Shown here one piece after another: positions 26,173 through 35,646 of a stretch of 64,000 nucleotides of DNA. Each line of letters starts with the position of its first letter. Positions within the stretch are counted from its first letter, which is position 1. The stretch comes from Pelomyxa schiedti (lineage: Eukaryota > Protista > Evosea): positions 1-64,000 of the forward strand of contig JAHLWZ010000475.1 in assembly GCA_020536535.1 (NCBI GenBank), written 5' to 3'. The position numbers and the translations under genes were made by a program. The notes under the pieces are model-generated. The model searched no databases. It was given only the letters and a program-made list of their open reading frames with translations, and was not told the origin of the DNA.

Positions 26173-26621
26173 AACAAACAAACAAAAGCAAATCCGTCAC
26201 AGTCCAAGAAATCACTTACACAAGTGTGGGTGCACAACTTGACTTGTCGCTGTCACAAGTTGGTGCCTGATGATCCTTGCGTGGGGGTCCCCCACGAGCT
26301 GTACAAGGATCATGGATGAAGACGATCGGGGCAAGGAAAAGCCATTCTTGTCATTTCCTTGCAGGTTGTTTGAAATTGAGACGATGGCTGTGAAGCCAAA
26401 GATTCCTGAACGTTGCTCCGGTTCTGCTTCCAAACCAAGAAGCTCAGATGTTGAACAACAGAAAAAACAAGTTTTTTCAAAATGTCCCCTGGGACGAAAA
26501 AAAAAAACAACACAACAAACCACTTCTTTCCCCCCTTCTTCGAATGTCACATCTGGCGTCCTTCGTTCCTCATTCCTTCCGGTTGTTGTTGTTCCCGTCA
26601 GCCTCCCGCCACAGTCCCACA

Positions 26622-29600
26622 ATGTTGTACCGCCTCCTTCTGCCCTTCCTCTGCATTTCAGTTCTGTCCCTGCACCTTTCCTCGTGCACGACCTGCAGCC
26701 TCACTCCCATAAGGGTGCAATTGCACTGGACCGCTCAGGCCCAGTTTGCCGGGTACTACTCAGCCGCTGTACGTGATTTCTATCCAAAAATCCCCCTGCC
26801 ACCCACTACACCAACATTTTTTTGCCCCAGAACAATCACATCTCCTAACCCCACGCTTCCCAAAGTCCTTTGGTTACTTTGAAGACGAATGCCTATCTGT
26901 TACCGTTGTGGCTGGGGGGCCTGGATACGATCCAGTTGAGGAATTGACATCTGGGAGATCACAATTCGCGAATCTGTGGGCTGCAACTGCACTTGCATCA
27001 CGTGAGGCCGGAACGAGATTGGTGACAGTGAGCCAATTATGGCAAAGTTCCAGTTTGGTTTGTGTCAGCTGGAAGTCATCTGGACTCTCAAATCCTAGTC
27101 ATTGGCCTGGTCACACTGTGGGAGTCTGGGATTCGAATGGATTAGCAACTGAGGTTGGTTGTGAAATTCAATTGTTATATTTCCAAAACTCCCTGCTCCT
27201 AGCTCAAGTTTCACTCAACTTTTTTTTCAGGTCCGAGTTTTGGGAAGAGAGTATGGAGTAAGTGAAAAGAACTATACTGAAGTGGCCCAAGGATTCACAG
27301 TCAGTCCTCTTTTTGATGGCAGTATTGAAGTAATATCTGCTACGACTTACAATGAGTTGTCTCAAATTCTGGAAACTGTGAATACTGAAACACAGGACAC
27401 GTACAAGACATCTGATTTGTACATCCTCAGATTAGCTGATAGTGGTGTGGTCATTGTGGAGGATAGCGTTGTTGTCACTGAGGAATTCCTTGCACAAAAT
27501 GAAACTATAGTGAAAGCTTTTTTAAAAGCTTTGACCCGTGGATGGCTAAAATGCCGACTTGATCCAGAATCCTGTGTTTCTCTTCTTCCCACCTCAGATG
27601 ACCACCAACGTTGGATGATGAATGAAGTCAACCGCATGTTGTGGCTGTTCCGGGGACAACCCTTTGGTGTGCCTACATCAAGTGCTTGGGACAGTACCCT
27701 ATCCTTGTGTCAGAGTGTCTCCACAACAAATCATCCGTTGAATAGCTCAGTATACACTGGTGCTTTGAATACGACTCTGCAACGTAGCGTTGTTCAGGAA
27801 CTGAGTGACGAAGGATATGATGTCTATGGGTTTAATTACACCTACACACAGTTTTCATGGTGCCTGAAGTGCAAGGCGGGATCTAAAGCAACTTTATGCC
27901 AGACAATGCCTGCCAGTAATAAAACCTCAACCACGCTAATTACAGCTATCTCGGTTCCTTTTGGAATCCTAGCACTTGCAGTAACTGCTATATCTATTGT
28001 ACTCCTTCTAAAGCTGAAAGAAGCTCGAAATAGAGTCCAGCAACTTGAAGACGAAATAGATAAGCACGCCAATTTCTCTGTTGTTGGTGCCCCCGCACAG
28101 AAGGCAATAGATTCTCTGATTCGACTAAAAAAGAAGCACTGGATTGGTACTTCTGACCATGATGAACTGAGCCGAGTTATATCCCTGATAGCAAGTAATA
28201 GATTATATAATGCAGATATGCTGGAAGAATCACTTCAAGCAAAAAAAGTGGATGCAGAAGTGGACGCCTTTCTTGTGGATCTACTTGTCAAGCATGATAA
28301 GGCAAACCCTTTGCACCTTCCTGAAAGCTCCACAACTAGCAGCATTATGACTATTCTTGTTGAAGCGGACCCAAGCATTTCGACTGATTCTCTTTTTAAA
28401 TCTATTGGAGATTCCCGGGCCACTAATGCTGGTTGGGATTTTGATATATTTTCCATGGCTCCCAATAGCATGCTTTCACGTGTGCTTTTTTCAAATCTCA
28501 AGCTGCATTAACTTCTCTCTAGCGCTAGAGATGATTGGCTTAGCATTACTTGAGGAATTTGGACTTGTGTCATACTTTCATTTGGATGTTAGAACTCTTG
28601 TTTCTTTTTTACGACGCCTCTGCAGTGGTTATAGCACTACTAATCCATATCATAATGCACTCCATGCTGCTGACGTAACGCAGGTAAAATTTTTGGCTGC
28701 GTAATTATATTCTAATACTGTTAGGCAATGGGTGTCCTTCTGTTCCAGTACCAGAAGTCAGCCCAAGCACAACACTGCAGTGCTGCTACTTTGTCACCCA
28801 TGGAACTTCTGTGTGCTGTAGTGGCTGCGCTGATACATGACTTCGCTCATCCAGGTATTCCATTTCCATATGTGAAGAACCTGCTTATTCTTCAAGGCGT
28901 AAACAATAACTTCATTACTGCCACAATGCATGAAATTGGGTTGCAACATAATTTCATTTCTCCACTAGAAAATATGCACGCTTCTGAAGCATTACAATTA
29001 CTTCTGAGGTGTCTCCTTCTCTCCCATTTTTCATTGTTTACCGGAAAAAGAAAGGAGAATAACTTTTTGACTGATCTGCCCTCAAATGAATATCTCGAGT
29101 TTCATCGGAACGTCGTAACACTCGTACTAGCAACAGACATGACGAGACACATTGAGATTACGGGACAAGTTACTGCCAAACTATCCACGACGAGTACTGG
29201 TGCCAAGTGAGCTCTTTCTAAACACGCCTTATTCTCACTGATGATTCCCAAAGGTCTTCCATAGATCACCTTCTCCTGCTACAGATAATGCTCAAGTATG
29301 CAGATATGCATTATAATAGTTTCTCCTAACGCAATCAACCTAAACAAAACAGGTTCGCAGATATCAGTGCACCGTCTCGCAAATGGCCTCAATGTGAGCG
29401 ATGGGCCACATTTGTTCAGAACGAATTCTACAGTCAAGGTGATAAGGAACGAGTACTGGGACTTACCATAAGTCCGGGAATGGACCGCACTACCACCAAT
29501 TGGCCCAAGTGCCAGGCCACGTTCATCAAATACGTGGTTCAGCCGCTAGCAGATTTGATGGACCAAATGATCAACCTCGAAACGCTTGGAATCAAGGAAA

Positions 29601-29647
29601 ACCTGAAAGATAACGAGGCCAGATGGATGGAATTAGATCACCAATGA
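26622..29647 (+). CDS. Single-pass receptor: signal peptide, NMT1/THI5-like solute-binding ectodomain, TM helix, coiled coil, class I cyclic-nucleotide phosphodiesterase
   Basis: Signal MLYRLLLPFLCISVLSL; NMT1/THI5 motifs VQLHWTAQAQFAGYYSA..GYFEDECLSV..GGP, ATTYNE, KAFLKALTRGW; TM ISVPFGILALAVTAISIVLLL; PDE motifs NPYHNALHAADVTQ, AALIHDFAHPGVNNNF, LENMH, LATDMTRH, KFADIS, EFYSQGDKER, QATFIKYVVQP. Confidence 0.92.
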
Positions 29648-29789
29648 CTCATAGAATGCAACACTTTTGCCAGTGTTGTAACTCACTATCTCTATCACAA
29701 CCAAAACCTACCACCAATAGTTTGTACATTACAAAAGAAAGAAATGGAAACTATCTTTTTTTTGTCACTTTGTTTTTGGTTTATGACTA

Positions 29790-31649: not shown

Positions 31650-33507
31650 ATGAACGACCTCCGTTCTGCAGCTGTTCGACGGGTTGACAACTTGGTTGGT
31701 CACATTACTGCCTCCCCGCTCAACAGGTGACTCCCATAACTTACGGTTTTGGTTACACCATTTAAGCCTCTTCCGGACTTCCACCCAACCCCACATCACT
31801 TTCTCCCTCGAATTCAAATCACATACCTCGTATTAACCGCCAAGTAGCGTAAAGAAGACAGTGTTGGTGTTAGGCGGTGGACTTGTGGGAGGTGTATTGG
31901 CTGGTGACCTCAGCACTGATGACGACATTGTTGTGACTGTTGCCGATGCTTCTCCTGCCGCCCTTGCTCGTTTAAAAACGGGTGTGTATCTCCACTGGGA
32001 CTCACAACTATGTCTAGCAAAATTACATAATAAAACAGTCGGCGAGTGACCTAACTATCTTGTATTTTCGAAGCGTACCCCAGATTGAACACGATAAAAT
32101 TGGATTTGTCGGACAAAGCTGCTATCATTAAAGCTGTTGGCCCATTTGATATGGTTGTTGGCGCACTACCTTCTTGGCTTGGGTTTAATGCCCTAAGTGC
32201 GGTTGTGGAAGCTAATAAGAACTACGTTGACATCTCTTTTATGGAGGTAGTCACCCTTCAGCTTTCTTTGTCCCTCACCTTTTTAAAAGCAAGACTACAC
32301 CCAGCTTGACAGCATAGCAAAGGCTAAAGGAACTGTTGTTGTATGTGACTGTGGAGTTGGTCCTGGAATGTCTCATATGAGTGCGTTTCTCTTCACCCTT
32401 GTAAGAGGATTCTTTCTAATCTCCATTTTTAATAGTGTGTGCCTATGGTTCGAAATTCTTCGTACCTGATGGTTGCGAAGATTGCATAATATACATTGGT
32501 GGTGTACCACTCTACCCGAAACCACCATTCAACTACAAAGTGCCTTTCTGTCCTCATGATGTTTTTGCTGAATACACACGTGATTCAACAGTCGTTAGGA
32601 ATGGCAAGGTGAAGAAAAAAGACCCCCATCATGTTATACTTACAGAACATTTAAGGTTCTCCGTGTTCCCGCGCTCACGGAACTGGAGACTATTCTTCTT
32701 CCTATGGTTCCTGAAGGCAAACCCATGGAGGCATTTATCACAGATGGATTGCGTTCATTAACGCAGAAACCAATTGCTAAAAATATGGTAAAGTACCTAA
32801 TTGGTAGGCTTATTTTTTTACCTGGTAGTGCACAGTGTGAAAAAACTCTCAGGTGGCCGGGATATCATAACTTTGTCCTGTCATTAAAGGATGCTGGCTT
32901 TTTCGGCATGGACCCAATAAAAATCACTTCCACTGTAAGTAATTTTCAATTTTTGTTCCTACTGTTCAGCTGTTTTCACAGGGGCAAACTATTGTTCCTG
33001 ATGCTGTTACATCTCAGCTCCTACTTCCTCACTGGAAGCAGAATCTTGATACAGACCCTGAGTGCACTGTATGACAGATTTGTTTTTCCATTGCCCTCAT
33101 ATTAGTTGTAAAAGGTCATGCGTGTCCAACTGACTGGTATCGGCAATGAACGTTCTGGAGCACCTGGCAAAAGGTGCCGGATAACATTTGACCTGTTTGT
33201 TTCGACAGACATTTCGAGACCTGTCAGAAGGTACCCAAACATTAAATCCAATAACCTCAAACTCTTCCGCTTCTCCTTCTACTTCAACACTGGGCAGTCA
33301 TTCACACTACTACATAGGTCTTCCATGGCTGTTTCTACCGGGTGCACATGTGCCCTTGTGGCCCGCATGGTCCTCCATGGACAATATGCTGTTCCCGGAG
33401 TACATCCCCCAGAGGTTATTGGATTCCAGGACAACCTCTTTGAGCAATACACACAAGGAATGGCCTCGCGGGGTGTGAGGTGGAGCTGCACCAAGGAAAT
33501 TCTCTGA
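31650..33507 (+). CDS. Prokaryote-type saccharopine dehydrogenase-like / lysine 6-dehydrogenase family oxidoreductase
   Basis: Rossmann VLVLGGGLVG, GALPSWLGF, YVDISF, DCGVGPGMSH, IYIGGVP..PPFNYK, AEYTR, EAFITDGLRSL, EKTLRWPG and SMAVSTG. Confidence 0.88.
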
Positions 33508-33732
33508 TCGATCTGCCTTGGGCTTGATAGTTTCTCCTACAATGCACCTCCAAAAGACGAAAACAAGACAAACAAAACTCCACAGGCGCGAAAATTGTCC
33601 CTGGACATTTAGTGCTTTCTTGTTTTGGAAAGGCAATTCAAGCAAGTTCACTACTTTTTTTTTGTTGCTGCGATCTTGCCAGGGAAAACAGACAACCAAA
33701 AGAATAAACGGGCTCGTTGGAAACGCACCGAG

Positions 33733-35646
33733 ATGAGCACAGGAGATCCAGAGGCCAATACGCGCTGTGCCAAACCACATAAATGTTTTTTCCCAGATGT
33801 GTACCCCGAGGTCGCTGACGACCAACACGAACCTAGTTGTTGTGGTAAATGCTGGGGCAACAGGTTGGTTTTTTTTTTTATCCATTGCTCTTCTCTCTCT
33901 CTCTTTTTTGTTGACAGAAACCAACTCGAACATTTTTTTTTATCTTTCAGGTTCGTGGGGCTTATCGTGTTGTGTCTTCTTCAACTTTTTGCAATGATAG
34001 ACAGAGCACTCCCTTCTTCAATGAAGGATACCATAAAAGAGGATTTGGATCTCAGTGACTTCCAAACAGGTTTCTACTTGCTGTATTTATTCTATTCTTA
34101 TCTATACGTAGGAGTCATTTTTACTGGTTTTGTTATCGTCAATGTCGTTGCATCTACATTTTTTGGCCATTTAGTTGATAAAGGATTTTCAAGAAAGGTA
34201 CTCAACAATCTAAATATGCTCATTCTTATCAACATAGCTTCTTCTTTCCTGCGGCATGGTCGCATGGTCTATTGCAGCCTGTTGTACGGCGTTATGTAAC
34301 AATTTTGTTCAACTTATGATTCCCAGAGCAATAGTCGGTGTGGGTGAAGGTACATGTTCTACATAGTTATTATTCTTCTTCTTACATTCTCTTCCTAAAG
34401 CCTCCCTTGCGGCAGTTCTTCCCCCCCTTATCTGTGACTACTTCCCACCACATCAAGTATCAAAAGCCCTTTCTACCACCTATACCATGATTCCAGTTGG
34501 CACAGCCCTATCATATGTGCTTGGGGGATATCTTTCTGGCATCATTGGTTGGCGGCTTGCTTTTGTTGTGAGCGGCGCACCCGGGATAATGGTATTTGCT
34601 GTATTGCTCTTGAAGACACCCGTAAAAGGGAATTATGAAGATGCTGCGGCAAAGAAAAGCACACCTCCTGGAGGTATAGAAGGACTGAAGGTACTCATGT
34701 TTACAAGGTCGTTAGTGACTTGGCCTTAAGATTTTATTGACTACTCCATCTTGGGTTGCTCTTCTCATAGGACGTCTTGGCACGGCCTTTTGTACAGGCG
34801 CAATGACAGATTGGCTCCCAACTTATTTCCTAAGGTGCTTGTTTATTTGTTATATTAACATATATCTTCTTCCACCTAGCTATTAATAAAACAAAAACAC
34901 TGATTTACGAACCCCCAAACCACACTCCCCCTCTCACAGAACCTTCAATCTAGAGGAAGGACAAGTTGGATTGATTGTTGGGTTCATTGTGCTTTGTGGT
35001 GGTTTCCTTGGGACTATTTGTGGAAGCCTTATTGGAGATTTTGCGCGCAGGTGCATGAGGCAGCCTTATTTCTTTGTTAGCTTTCTTGCAGCTTTCCTTA
35101 CAGCTAGCTTGGTTACCACCTATCTCTTGCTTGAGAATAAGTGGGTGTCCTTATCTTTCGCATTTGTTGCGACTATCTGCCTCTTTTTAGCACTTGGTGG
35201 GATACTTCTATAATACACTCTAAACTAATCGTCTTTCAAAGGCCCACTGGGTGCGATATTGAATAATTGTGTTGCTGCAAATCTCAGGGGAAGAGCTAAC
35301 AGGTGTGATCTTATCCACAAACTCTGTGAATAACAAAAACAGTTATGAGGCCCTTTTTGTCTGTATCTTGGGAGCTTCATACAGCTCTGCCGCTGTGGTA
35401 TGGAAAACAAATCCAACTACTTGACACTCATACATTGTGCAGGGGGCAGTTTCAGATGCCACTGGCAATGTTGCATACGGGCTTCTTTTAGTGCCTTGCA
35501 TGTTGCTGATACCCATAGTTGTTTGGTGTATAGCTTGGCTGTTTATCAAGCAGGACACCTCTGGTGAAACCTACAGAGAGAAAACAGAAGCAGAAAAAAA
35601 AGATACAAAGCGCAACGAATTGACTGGCCTAGTTTCAGAACATTAA
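33733..35646 (+). CDS. Spinster-like MFS transporter
   Basis: MIDR..IKEDLDLSDFQTG, FGHLVDKGFSRK, RAIVGVGEA, PPLICDYFP, IPVGTALSYVLGG..GWRLAF and multiple TM segments. Confidence 0.88.

Follow-up and report, generated by a model that had tools for sequence, protein, structure and literature searches.

A nine-exon gene of Pelomyxa schiedti, on the forward strand at 26622-29647 of the 64,000-nucleotide stretch of DNA analysed here (the window), encodes a protein in which a ThiY-like binding domain is joined through one transmembrane (TM) helix to a class I phosphodiesterase (PDE). We regard it as a real single gene, and its product, an 859 aa type I protein in the in-frame model of 859 codons, is probably a chemoreceptor-type PDE under ligand control. 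The features of the gene and of its predicted product are as follows.

26622..26768, + strand: exon 1, aa 1-49; start codon, signal peptide and first strand of the binding domain (VQLHWTAQAQFAGYY)
26622-26687, + strand: signal peptide, aa 1 to ~22
26688..27953, + strand: NMT1/ThiY-type class II binding domain, predicted extracellular, aa 23-386; interrupted by introns 1 and 2
26866..27153, + strand: exon 2, aa 50-145; N-terminal lobe of the NMT1/ThiY-like domain; GT..AG borders
27231..28479, + strand: exon 3, aa 146-561; remaining ectodomain, TM helix, juxtamembrane module, linker and first PDE helix
27954..28010, + strand: single TM helix (VPFGILALAVTAISIVLLL), aa 387-405; hydropathy 2.62 over 19 residues
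28011..28313, + strand: conserved juxtamembrane module, aa 406 to ~506
28314..28430, + strand: Ser/Thr-rich linker, aa ~507-545; predicted disordered (pLDDT 26-37)
28431..29647, + strand: class I PDE catalytic domain, aa 546-859; end of exon 3 and exons 4-9
28523-28683, 28725-28854 and 28897-29008, + strand: exons 4-6; PDE catalytic domain
29051-29206, 29254-29295 and 29353-29647, + strand: exons 7-9; PDE catalytic domain, stop codon included

One gene for sensor and phosphodiesterase

GT..AG borders were found at all eight introns of the gene. An earlier reading made from the sequence alone had placed the sensor, TM helix and PDE start in one 423-codon open reading frame (ORF), and this ORF was confirmed at 27240-28511. 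Encoded in it are NMT1 profile positions 113-214 and, after the TM helix and linker, the 'GWDFDIFSM' with which the structural PDE domain begins; the Pfam PDEase_I boundary lies further on, at YHNALH in exon 4. The sensor-PDE fusion is not a splicing artefact, because a single exon codes for everything from the C-terminal half of the sensor to the first PDE helix, with TM helix and linker in between. The last three introns of the model were matched exactly by an RNA-seq contig, which shows the joints 29206>29254 and 29295>29353 in addition to the pieces 28989-29006 / 29049-29206; this RNA support comes from one single-cell run and covers only the 3' 0.6 kb (exons 6-9). The 5' exon was chosen by homology, and here the model departs from the deposited protein KAH3762201.1 (P0001). 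The deposited protein has no signal peptide, and it matched NMT1 with 110.2 bits (profile positions 2-214 of 216) and PDEase_I with 222.6 bits (cut-off 24.8; profile positions 1-228 of 238).

An artefactual gene model, in which the gene of a secreted or anchored NMT1 protein had been run together with an independent PDE gene, would be compatible with RNA contigs that reach exons 6-9 only and with the errors seen in deposited models of the family (that of the paralog, for example, is merged with a WD40 gene), but it retains next to no probability once the uninterrupted exon is considered together with the absence of any stop codon or gene-sized gap between the NMT1 and PDE parts. The same continuity was found in the paralog and on the environmental contig L017, which carries aa 20-553 in a single frame with PDEase_I called in the next ORF, and which has an intron at the place of intron 1 (after YYAA). 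Both domains are also encoded on a single Tetraselmis transcript (P0150) and in mRNA-based models of Mastigamoeba balamuthi (P0004 and P0006), which have the same NMT1-TM-PDE build. For the neighbouring genes (saccharopine-dehydrogenase-like, MFS and DUF3752), no functional link to the receptor-PDE was found.

Ectodomain and membrane topology

As the sequence-only reading had proposed, a signal peptide (MLYRLLLPFLCISVLSLHLSSC) was found before the first binding strand; it directly precedes the conserved 'VQLHW..QAQFAGYY' strand, a layout that was the same in all homologs inspected. The Pfam match to NMT1 (PF09084) is spread over two exons, with E-values of 1.7e-11 for exon 2 (profile positions 14-102) and 8.3e-11 for exon 3. 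An AlphaFold2 model of the ectodomain (pLDDT 93.8, pTM 0.91) was superposed by Foldseek on ThiY (3ix1, TMt 0.81), a thiamin-binding protein (4nmy, 0.80) and Thi5 (4esx, 0.80). Profile match and two-lobe class II periplasmic-binding fold place the ectodomain in the NMT1/THI5-like family, and Pfam, model and superposition agree on the ThiY-like fold named earlier. The N-terminal pocket motif of the family, QLxWxxQAQFAGY, has been retained. Likeness to ThiY (FAMP/HMP-binding), 4nmy and Thi5/THI13 is clear in fold (TM-score ~0.8, E 1e-17 to 4e-19) and detectable in sequence (E 1e-9 for THI13, 4e-6 for ThiY). However, identity to ThiY, 4nmy and Thi5 is just 15-19%, some 60 additional residues form a Cys-containing membrane-proximal extension of the ectodomain, and the domain is tethered to a TM helix, whereas ThiY-type proteins serve an ABC importer.

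In the phmmer alignment, catalytic residues K62 and H66 of Thi5 are replaced by Leu and Thr, and its CCCF motif by VVIV; H66 was pinpointed by comparing the 4esw 'H66G' entry with 4esx. K62 is the PLP-binding Lys of Thi5, and H66 its active-site His, which is consumed in the reaction. With K62, H66 and CCCF all missing, a Thi5/THI13-type HMP-P synthase, which works by a suicide-His mechanism (PMC7187267), was ruled out. The replacement of K62 and H66 by Leu and Thr predicts that the ectodomain is a binder and not an enzyme. The nearest folds bind FAMP, thiamin or PLP, and by this analogy a thiamine-pyrimidine-type ligand may be taken as a lead only.

One hydrophobic helix was found, at aa 387-405, as expected from the single TM helix claimed before. 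A type I topology, with the ectodomain outside and the PDE in the cytosol, is supported by several sequence features: N-glycosylation sequons number 6 in the ectodomain versus 1 on the PDE side, the ectodomain contains 9 Cys with conserved pairs in its NMT1 part, and the flank following the TM helix (KLKEARNR) is positive. The inverse orientation, in which the PDE would degrade extracellular cyclic nucleotide and the NMT1 domain would be cytosolic, has a counterpart in Dictyostelium Pde4, whose class I catalytic domain lies outside the cell, and would fit the missing signal peptide of P0001. In addition to the features above, it is opposed by the in-frame ATG at 26622, from which translation would begin with a canonical signal peptide, placed as in all homologs, and we consider an inverted protein very improbable.

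Catalytic domain and proposed coupling to the sensor

The class I PDE profile (PF00233) matched over the entire catalytic domain, whose key residues are H605, H609, H653, D654, D765 and Q816. H609, H653, D654, D765 and Q816 were aligned with equivalent residues of PDE4C and PDE1B. By the roles established in PDE4 structures, the metal ligands are the second His of HNxxH, the H-D pair and the Asp of the A-D-x-S motif, and the invariant Gln contacts the substrate. The aligned motifs comprise YHNALHAADV, HDFAHPGVNNNF, LENMH, LATDM, ADIS and the invariant Gln, and HDFAHPGVNNNF satisfies the signature H-D-[LIVMFY]-x-H-x-[AG]-x-x-[NQ]-x-[LIVMFY]. The claim of an intact PDE was borne out, in that every metal and substrate motif could be found and aligned to PDE4C/PDE1B, and the predicted cytosolic domain is most likely catalytically competent. 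The equivalents of the substrate-related PDE4 residues Asn321 and Tyr329 are Ala and Cys, and a preference for cAMP or cGMP is not readable from the sequence.

Matches of the catalytic domain to PDE4C (E 2e-47), PDE1B (4e-47) and PDE8A (2e-46) leave PDE1B no closer than the other two, and the deposited name "calmodulin-dependent PDE1b" is unsupported. Mammalian PDE1B can be aligned over the catalytic domain, but the N-terminal region of the receptor-PDE is unrelated to it: these 545 aa consist of the signal peptide, NMT1 ectodomain, TM helix and an Archamoebae-type module, and N-terminal of the catalytic domain no Pfam match besides NMT1 was found. In public records, proteins of the family are misnamed 'calmodulin-dependent PDE1b' and carry a wrong 5' exon, which hides the architecture.

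When aa 382-859 were paired with a second copy of themselves in a complex prediction, the score was 0.68, against 0.00 for the best of 3 controls; this pass may reflect memory of solved PDE dimers. The mark used for this score was reached by 21/30 proteins solved as same-chain pairs and 0/23 single chains, and among eukaryotes by 17/29 pairs and 0/30 single chains. The runs shared at least 54% of contacts, partner pLDDT was at least 74, and confident pairing contacts were confined to the catalytic domain, through which the protein probably pairs.

Between membrane and enzyme, the TM helix runs unbroken into the cytosol in the structure model. The juxtamembrane module consists of this helical extension (RVQQLEDEI) and a small helical bundle (APAQKAIDSLIRL ... 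LIASNRLY ... DVDAFLVDLL). The coiled coil of the sequence-only reading was retained in part: ~17 cytosolic helical residues past the TM helix have a conserved a-d-a spacing (RVxxLExQL), but they do not form a long coiled coil. The module is conserved in 20 receptor PDEs of Archamoebae and Tetraselmis, whichever ectodomain they carry (alignment A2). When its profile was compared with solved structures, only designed helical repeat proteins were matched, which we regard as noise, and no known relative was found; PDE4 chains containing UCR modules were included in this comparison and remained unmatched. The linker of ~45 residues between module and catalytic domain is conserved across the family in neither length nor sequence (alignment A2), and no docking of the module on the catalytic domain was seen in fold or dimer prediction.

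We infer that ligand occupancy alters PDE activity. The ThiY-like domain would act outside the cell as a Venus flytrap that binds a small metabolite, and one TM helix, the conserved juxtamembrane helical module and a flexible tether would link this sensor to the PDE. A linker of predicted disorder, whose length differs between family members, makes a rigid mechanical relay unlikely, and repositioning of the module is preferred over a rigid signalling helix. With the tether predicted to be disordered, the likeliest route would be a ligand-dependent shift of the module, which may serve as a tethered regulatory or autoinhibitory element similar to the UCR modules of PDE4. By analogy, a sensor role has precedent, as homologous ectodomains are joined to 7tm_3 or cyclases in eukaryotes and to histidine kinases or GGDEF in bacteria.

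The same disordered, length-variable tether ahead of the catalytic domain would also suit a constitutive membrane-anchored PDE, a localised cAMP/cGMP sink without ligand allostery, whose ectodomain would be used for nutrient capture or hand-over, adhesion, sorting to a membrane patch or clustering. Class I PDE catalytic domains retain activity when isolated, and a predicted contact between module and catalytic domain was not found, both of which count in favour of such an enzyme. Yet the ectodomain family has been fused repeatedly to 7tm_3, cyclases, bacterial kinases and GGDEF, and a strongly conserved module on PDEs with unrelated ectodomains is hard to square with a mere anchor. The constitutive enzyme has a real but distinctly smaller chance of being correct, and control by ligand is kept as the preferred reading of this receptor-PDE.

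Relatives, known systems and significance

In a representative protein search, exon 3 as query gave 323 matches, full-length NMT1-PDE proteins among them, whereas a word-index homolog search with the ectodomain returned 7 proteins only. Within the P. schiedti genome, a paralog on contig C721 has the same order of sensor, TM helix and PDE; its deposited model is fused to a WD40 gene. A paralog count, which the earlier reading had suggested, gave two NMT1-type receptor PDEs in a genome where PDE loci number ~65 and cyclase loci at least 15. The juxtamembrane module was found beside PDE matches at 11 loci of this genome. The locus in the window scored 122.9 bits against the module profile, being itself among the 20 rows that build this profile. 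Judged by sequence, at least 11 receptor PDEs of this genome share a TM-proximal chassis but differ in their ectodomains, and two of them, this gene included, are of NMT1 type. Signal peptide, ectodomain, TM helix, module and PDEase_I, which together provisionally define an Archamoebae receptor-PDE chassis family, were all found (alignments A2 and A3), and the module follows the pattern RVxxLExQLG...GTPAExVI...LIASNKLYKAD...DVDAFL. Other Archamoebae receptor PDEs, with dCache, OpuAC or other ectodomains (M. balamuthi P0055, P0066 and P0071; P. schiedti P0144), have the same module and PDE, with a cytosolic part that is 33-40% identical, but their ectodomains are not of NMT1/ThiY type.

Homologous ectodomains are fused in eukaryotes to 7tm_3 (class C 7TM), TM plus cyclase, TM plus kinase-like domain plus cyclase, and glutaminase. 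In the ectodomain tree, the P. schiedti domain groups with other eukaryotic receptor ectodomains, and a eukaryote-wide clade of such ectodomains was recovered. The earlier description of the domain as bacterial-type therefore holds for the fold but not in the sense of a recent bacterial graft. Recent bacterial transfer or contamination by an endosymbiont contig was rejected on account of the 8 spliceosomal introns and the clustering with eukaryotic receptor ectodomains. No bacterial protein with a class I PDEase_I was found, and PF00233 was present in 0/14 control prokaryote genomes. In both trees the branch of Tetraselmis is very long, and for the NMT1-PDE build in Archamoebae and Tetraselmis one or two origins are, from the sequences, neither shown nor excluded.

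Use of NMT1 domains as bacterial signalling input, which the earlier reading had named, was observed in histidine kinases, GGDEF proteins and anti-sigma regulators (P0156-P0160), which resemble the receptor-PDE in their input but have prokaryotic outputs. Homologous ectodomains also occur in the NMT1-TM-cyclases P0036, P0078 (Lacrimia), P0022, P0067 (Fabomonas) and P0162. Receptor guanylyl and adenylyl cyclases (natriuretic-peptide receptors, trypanosome cyclases) similarly combine a binding-protein ectodomain, one TM helix and a cyclic-nucleotide enzyme. In animals and trypanosomes, however, the binding domains are of class I (ANF/LivJ-type) and not class II NMT1; cyclase catalysis requires dimerisation while PDE catalysis does not; and receptor cyclases synthesise the cyclic nucleotide that the receptor-PDE is predicted to degrade. 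Among PDEs, the choanoflagellate Rh-PDE, a light-gated rhodopsin joined to a cytosolic class I PDE, is alike as a membrane receptor fused directly to the enzyme, through which an external stimulus reaches cyclic-nucleotide breakdown with no G protein involved, but its sensor is a multi-helix rhodopsin and not a signal peptide, soluble-type binding domain and single TM helix. On this comparison of architectures, the receptor-PDE belongs among the receptor enzymes of cyclic-nucleotide signalling. The suggestion of an uncharacterised receptor class stands insofar as no literature describing NMT1 plus PDE or a chemoreceptor-type class I PDE was found within the searchable papers. It does not stand as a claim of an unseen architecture, since the build is already public, though misnamed, in P. 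schiedti, M. balamuthi and Tetraselmis records, and the light-gated Rh-PDE has been characterised.

Textbook control of PDEs is cytosolic, through GAF, PAS, REC, calmodulin or phosphorylation, and among receptor-type class I PDEs only a light-gated one is known to have been characterised. A PDE gated by its ectodomain would, if true, be the degradative mirror image of receptor guanylyl cyclases and would show that an outside chemical can directly bring down a second messenger in eukaryotes. The Archamoebae family is large, and its modular build, in which one chassis is combined with different sensors, provides natural domain swaps for experiment. In eukaryotes the NMT1 ectodomain recurs as a receptor module, a use that was undiscussed in the searchable papers. 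More tentatively, free-living Archamoebae and Tetraselmis could possess, independently or by shared descent, an undescribed class of chemoreceptors in which a metabolite on the ThiY-like domain directly tunes cAMP/cGMP destruction, the domain being drawn from an ancient eukaryotic family that in other protists supplies class C GPCR-like receptors and receptor cyclases as well. If so, a sense for one class of small metabolites, possibly compounds of the vitamin B1 pyrimidine type that bacteria release, would be widespread among eukaryotes, though so far unrecognised.

Gene model and reality of the fusion

The receptor phosphodiesterase (PDE) gene of Pelomyxa schiedti lies in an assembly of 52,367,397 bases and 5337 contigs; the published single-cell assembly of this species has 52.4 Mb, 5337 scaffolds, 7.4 introns per gene and 98% GT-AG splice sites (PMC8887013). 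Among plus-strand ORFs at 26.4-29.7 kb, NMT1 was detected as two pieces (E 1.7e-11 and 8.3e-11) alongside PDEase_I matches (E 3.4e-21 and 2.4e-4). A nine-exon model built by reading the genomic sequence has an open frame of 859 codons, PDE motifs that are uninterrupted once the exons are joined, and GT..AG borders at 8/8 introns (41-97 nt each).

Exons of the nine-exon model (window coordinates)
26622-26768, + strand, exon 1
26866-27153, + strand, exon 2
27231-28479, + strand, exon 3
28523-28683, + strand, exon 4
28725-28854, + strand, exon 5
28897-29008, + strand, exon 6
29051-29206, + strand, exon 7
29254-29295, + strand, exon 8
29353-29647, + strand, exon 9

A contig from one single-cell RNA-seq run maps to 28989-29006, 29049-29206, 29254-29295 and 29353-29650, with GT..AG at both the 29206>29254 and 29295>29353 joints, and the last three introns are confirmed because it aligns across them; RNA cover from this run is absent over the 5' 2.4 kb. 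Database queries were restricted to exon 3 or the deposited protein (KAH3762201.1, P0001), with the joined model kept to local scripts, and a protein search with exon 3 returned this same deposited product of the locus. The deposited model joins an upstream exon (window 26270-26660) midway through the hydrophobic segment, which leaves no signal peptide. The ATG at 26622 gives MLYRLLLPFLCISVLSLHLSSC directly ahead of the VQLHWTAQAQFAGYY strand. Since a signal peptide is found at the equivalent position in the paralog, an environmental contig (L017), Mastigamoeba balamuthi P0006, Tetraselmis and the 7TM and cyclase relatives, the start at 26622 proposed by the sequence-only reading is preferred over the deposited first exon.

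Five lines of evidence show that the NMT1-PDE fusion is real. Exon 3 (416 codons) lies within the 423-codon ORF previously described as joining ectodomain, transmembrane (TM) helix and PDE start, and on its own does span all three: it carries positions 113-214 of the NMT1 profile, then the TM helix, ~140 cytosolic residues and 'GWDFDIFSMAPNSMLS', the structural start of the PDE, aligned with residue 24 of the PDE4C catalytic construct. Only two NMT1 loci occur in the P. schiedti genome, this one and C721:41008-43711 on another contig, and PDE exons follow both, which puts the number of paralogs, a question raised by the earlier reading, at one; the paralog's ORFs run in the same order, with 54% identity over aa 1-661. 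The environmental eukaryotic contig (ENA ERZ21831265) has a gene for a 49-54% identical protein, with aa 20-553 in one frame, PDEase_I in the next ORF and an intron position matching intron 1 of the window gene. M. balamuthi P0004 (914 aa) and P0006 both have NMT1 plus PDEase_I, and Tetraselmis astigmatica P0150 (999 aa) carries the two on one complete transcript. Against this record, an artefact of the gene model is very improbable.

Several further features of these loci were observed. Intron 8 opens with bases (CAA|GTATGCAGATAT) that nearly copy the acceptor and exon 9 start (CAG|GTTCGCAGATAT; window 29293-29365), the paralog reads LKYADISAPS at this site with no intron, and the RNA contig has intron 8 spliced; from sequence, the intron looks like a gain through small tandem duplication. 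The study's single DNA sample has runs that differ at 26582, 26605, 26694, 26735, 27723 and 28502 (one 3-base deletion, one GCA insertion and four substitutions). Both indels are in frame, one shortly before the start codon (26582) and one at the predicted cleavage region of the signal peptide (26694); allelic or cell-to-cell variation is the probable source of these differences. The paralog's deposited model P0002 (1655 aa; C721 ~38.5-46 kb) joins the NMT1-PDE to a WD40-repeat gene lying upstream of it and is probably a merged gene model. Among the downstream neighbors (window 33118-34296) are the C-terminal domain of a saccharopine dehydrogenase and a fragment of an MFS transporter, and no link between these and the PDE gene was seen.

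Sensor fold and membrane topology

The ectodomain, modeled from a 73-row alignment, reached a pLDDT of 93.8 and a pTM of 0.91. Foldseek placed ThiY, the FAMP-binding protein (3ix1; E 4e-19, TMt 0.81), at top rank, with a thiamin-bound ABC substrate-binding protein (4nmy) and Thi5 (4esx) both at TMt 0.80 and lower scores for taurine, sulfonate, nitrate, bicarbonate and PQQ binders, and the best solved relatives by sequence were THI13/Thi5 (1e-9) and ThiY (4e-6). As fold ranking and sequence matches both favor ThiY/Thi5, the earlier label 'ThiY-like' was correct. The wider NMT1 family has many different ligands, and a riboswitch class named for NMT1 genes is reported to sense xanthine and urate (PMC7373994). 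Thi5 consumes its own His in its mechanism (PMC7187267). In the sequence alignment, His66 and Lys62 of Thi5 are replaced by Thr and Leu and CCCF by VVIV, which ruled out the ectodomain as a Thi5 enzyme.

The N-terminal part (364 residues) contains six N-x-S/T sequons and nine Cys, two of them at family consensus C..C positions, and the C-terminal part (454 residues) contains one sequon; KLKEARNR comes next after the TM helix (aa 387-405). Because sequons, Cys and this post-TM stretch agree, the predicted topology is sensor outside and PDE inside, and an inverted arrangement has very little probability.

Catalytic domain, juxtamembrane module and proposed regulation

The C-terminal 320 residues matched PDE4C, PDE1B and PDE8A at ~1e-47, with YHNALHAADV, HDFAHPGVNNNF, LENMH, LATDM, FADIS and the invariant Gln in register with these PDEs, so that all metal-binding His/Asp motifs claimed from the sequence are aligned. 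The positions of PDE4 Asn321 and Tyr329, residues with roles in substrate choice, are Ala and Cys here, and that choice is not legible from sequence. The deposited name 'calcium calmodulin-dependent PDE 1b' was rejected, as PDE1 is not singled out and there is no room for a calmodulin-binding N-terminus; judged on its sequence, KAH3762201.1 owes this unsupported name to annotation transfer.

In an alignment of 20 receptor PDE cytosolic parts, a conserved module directly after the TM helix reads RVxxLExQLG, then GTPAExVI..L, LIASNKLYKAD and DVDAFL.D.L. The module is common to proteins with a weak dCache or no Pfam ectodomain match, is present in diverged form in Tetraselmis, and was located by profile search at 11 loci of the genome, all adjoining PDE exons; a profile search against solved structures found no relative of it. 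In the AlphaFold2 model, the TM helix extends ~17 residues into the cytosol, the module forms four short helices of modest confidence (pLDDT 52-77), the ~45 residues after it fall below pLDDT 40 and the PDE domain is above 90; it is also this low-pLDDT tether that differs in length and composition from one family member to another. Homodimer prediction for aa 382-859 passed (score 0.68 vs 0.00 for the best of three controls; at least 54% contact agreement between runs; partner pLDDT at least 74), at a mark reached by 21/30 one-chain-pair and 0/23 single-chain structures and, on eukaryotes, by 17/29 pairs and 0/30 single chains. Confident contacts involved only catalytic-domain residues 666-722 (859-aa model numbering), and the pass may be a memory of solved PDE dimers.

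The evidence shows a binding domain that faces outward, a single TM helix and a competent PDE that faces inward, and we consider it reasonably probable that PDE activity is ligand-regulated in some way. Ligand would make the flytrap domains close or re-pack and thereby shift the TM helix together with the helix that extends it. Given the flexible tether, a tethered regulator, either autoinhibitory or activating, like the UCR modules in PDE4, is the more fitting picture of the conserved module, and how it engages the catalytic pair would vary with ectodomain state. That the protein is a constitutive, membrane-anchored PDE is rather unlikely.

Origin of the sensor and novelty of the architecture

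An exhaustive search with exon 3 gave 323 matches, among which the same ectodomain, membrane-proximal part included, occurs on several outputs.

Outputs joined to the ectodomain
Class C-type 7TM: Rhizamoeba P0007, metagenomic P0008, chytrid multi-TM P0011 and P0012
TM and cyclase: P0036, Lacrimia P0078
TM, kinase-like domain and cyclase: P0022, Fabomonas P0067
TM and glutaminase: Yihiella P0074

The order of NMT1 ectodomain, TM helix, kinase-like domain and guanylate cyclase in P0067/P0161 (Fabomonas tropica) and P0022 is the layout of animal natriuretic-peptide receptors, whose binding domain is of a different class. P0074 (Yihiella yeosuensis, a dinoflagellate) is an odd receptor-enzyme combination of NMT1 ectodomain, Ephrin_rec_like, TM helix and glutaminase. 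The ectodomains of P0150 (PDE) and P0162 (cyclase), from Tetraselmis and a relative, are 39% identical, and the two are possibly a matched make/break pair for the messenger answering one ligand. Bacteria, too, use the NMT1 domain as an input, on kinases and GGDEF proteins.

A quick maximum-likelihood tree groups the Archamoebae NMT1-PDE ectodomains in a single clade (SH-aLRT 97) with Pelomyxa/environmental (99) and Mastigamoeba (95) subclades, placed among eukaryotic receptors and outside the block of short stand-alone binding proteins. This clade and the varied eukaryotic outputs indicate that the fusion is old within Archamoebae and the NMT1 sensor an established eukaryotic receptor module. 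In the cytosolic-part tree, the two Pelomyxa NMT1-PDEs pair (100), as do the two Mastigamoeba ones (100), over an unresolved backbone; together with the single ectodomain clade, these pairs fit one ancestral NMT1-PDE duplicated separately in the two lineages.

M. balamuthi has expanded guanylate cyclases and PDEs, described with receptor architecture unmentioned (PMC8136499), and this expansion is echoed in P. schiedti by ~65 PDE loci (genome profile matches counted by eye) and at least 15 cyclase loci. Full-text literature searches returned nothing relevant on NMT1 with PDEase_I, 7tm_3 or (NMT1/THI5) cyclase, nor on 'receptor(-type) phosphodiesterase' or extracellular/transmembrane PDEase_I architecture. 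NMT1-PDE sequences are already public, with their architecture absent from the literature searched. Apicomplexan multi-TM PDEs have been described, but theirs is an architecture without a ligand-binding ectodomain. Set against the known receptor cyclases and Rh-PDE, the NMT1-PDE is a new variation on these designs.
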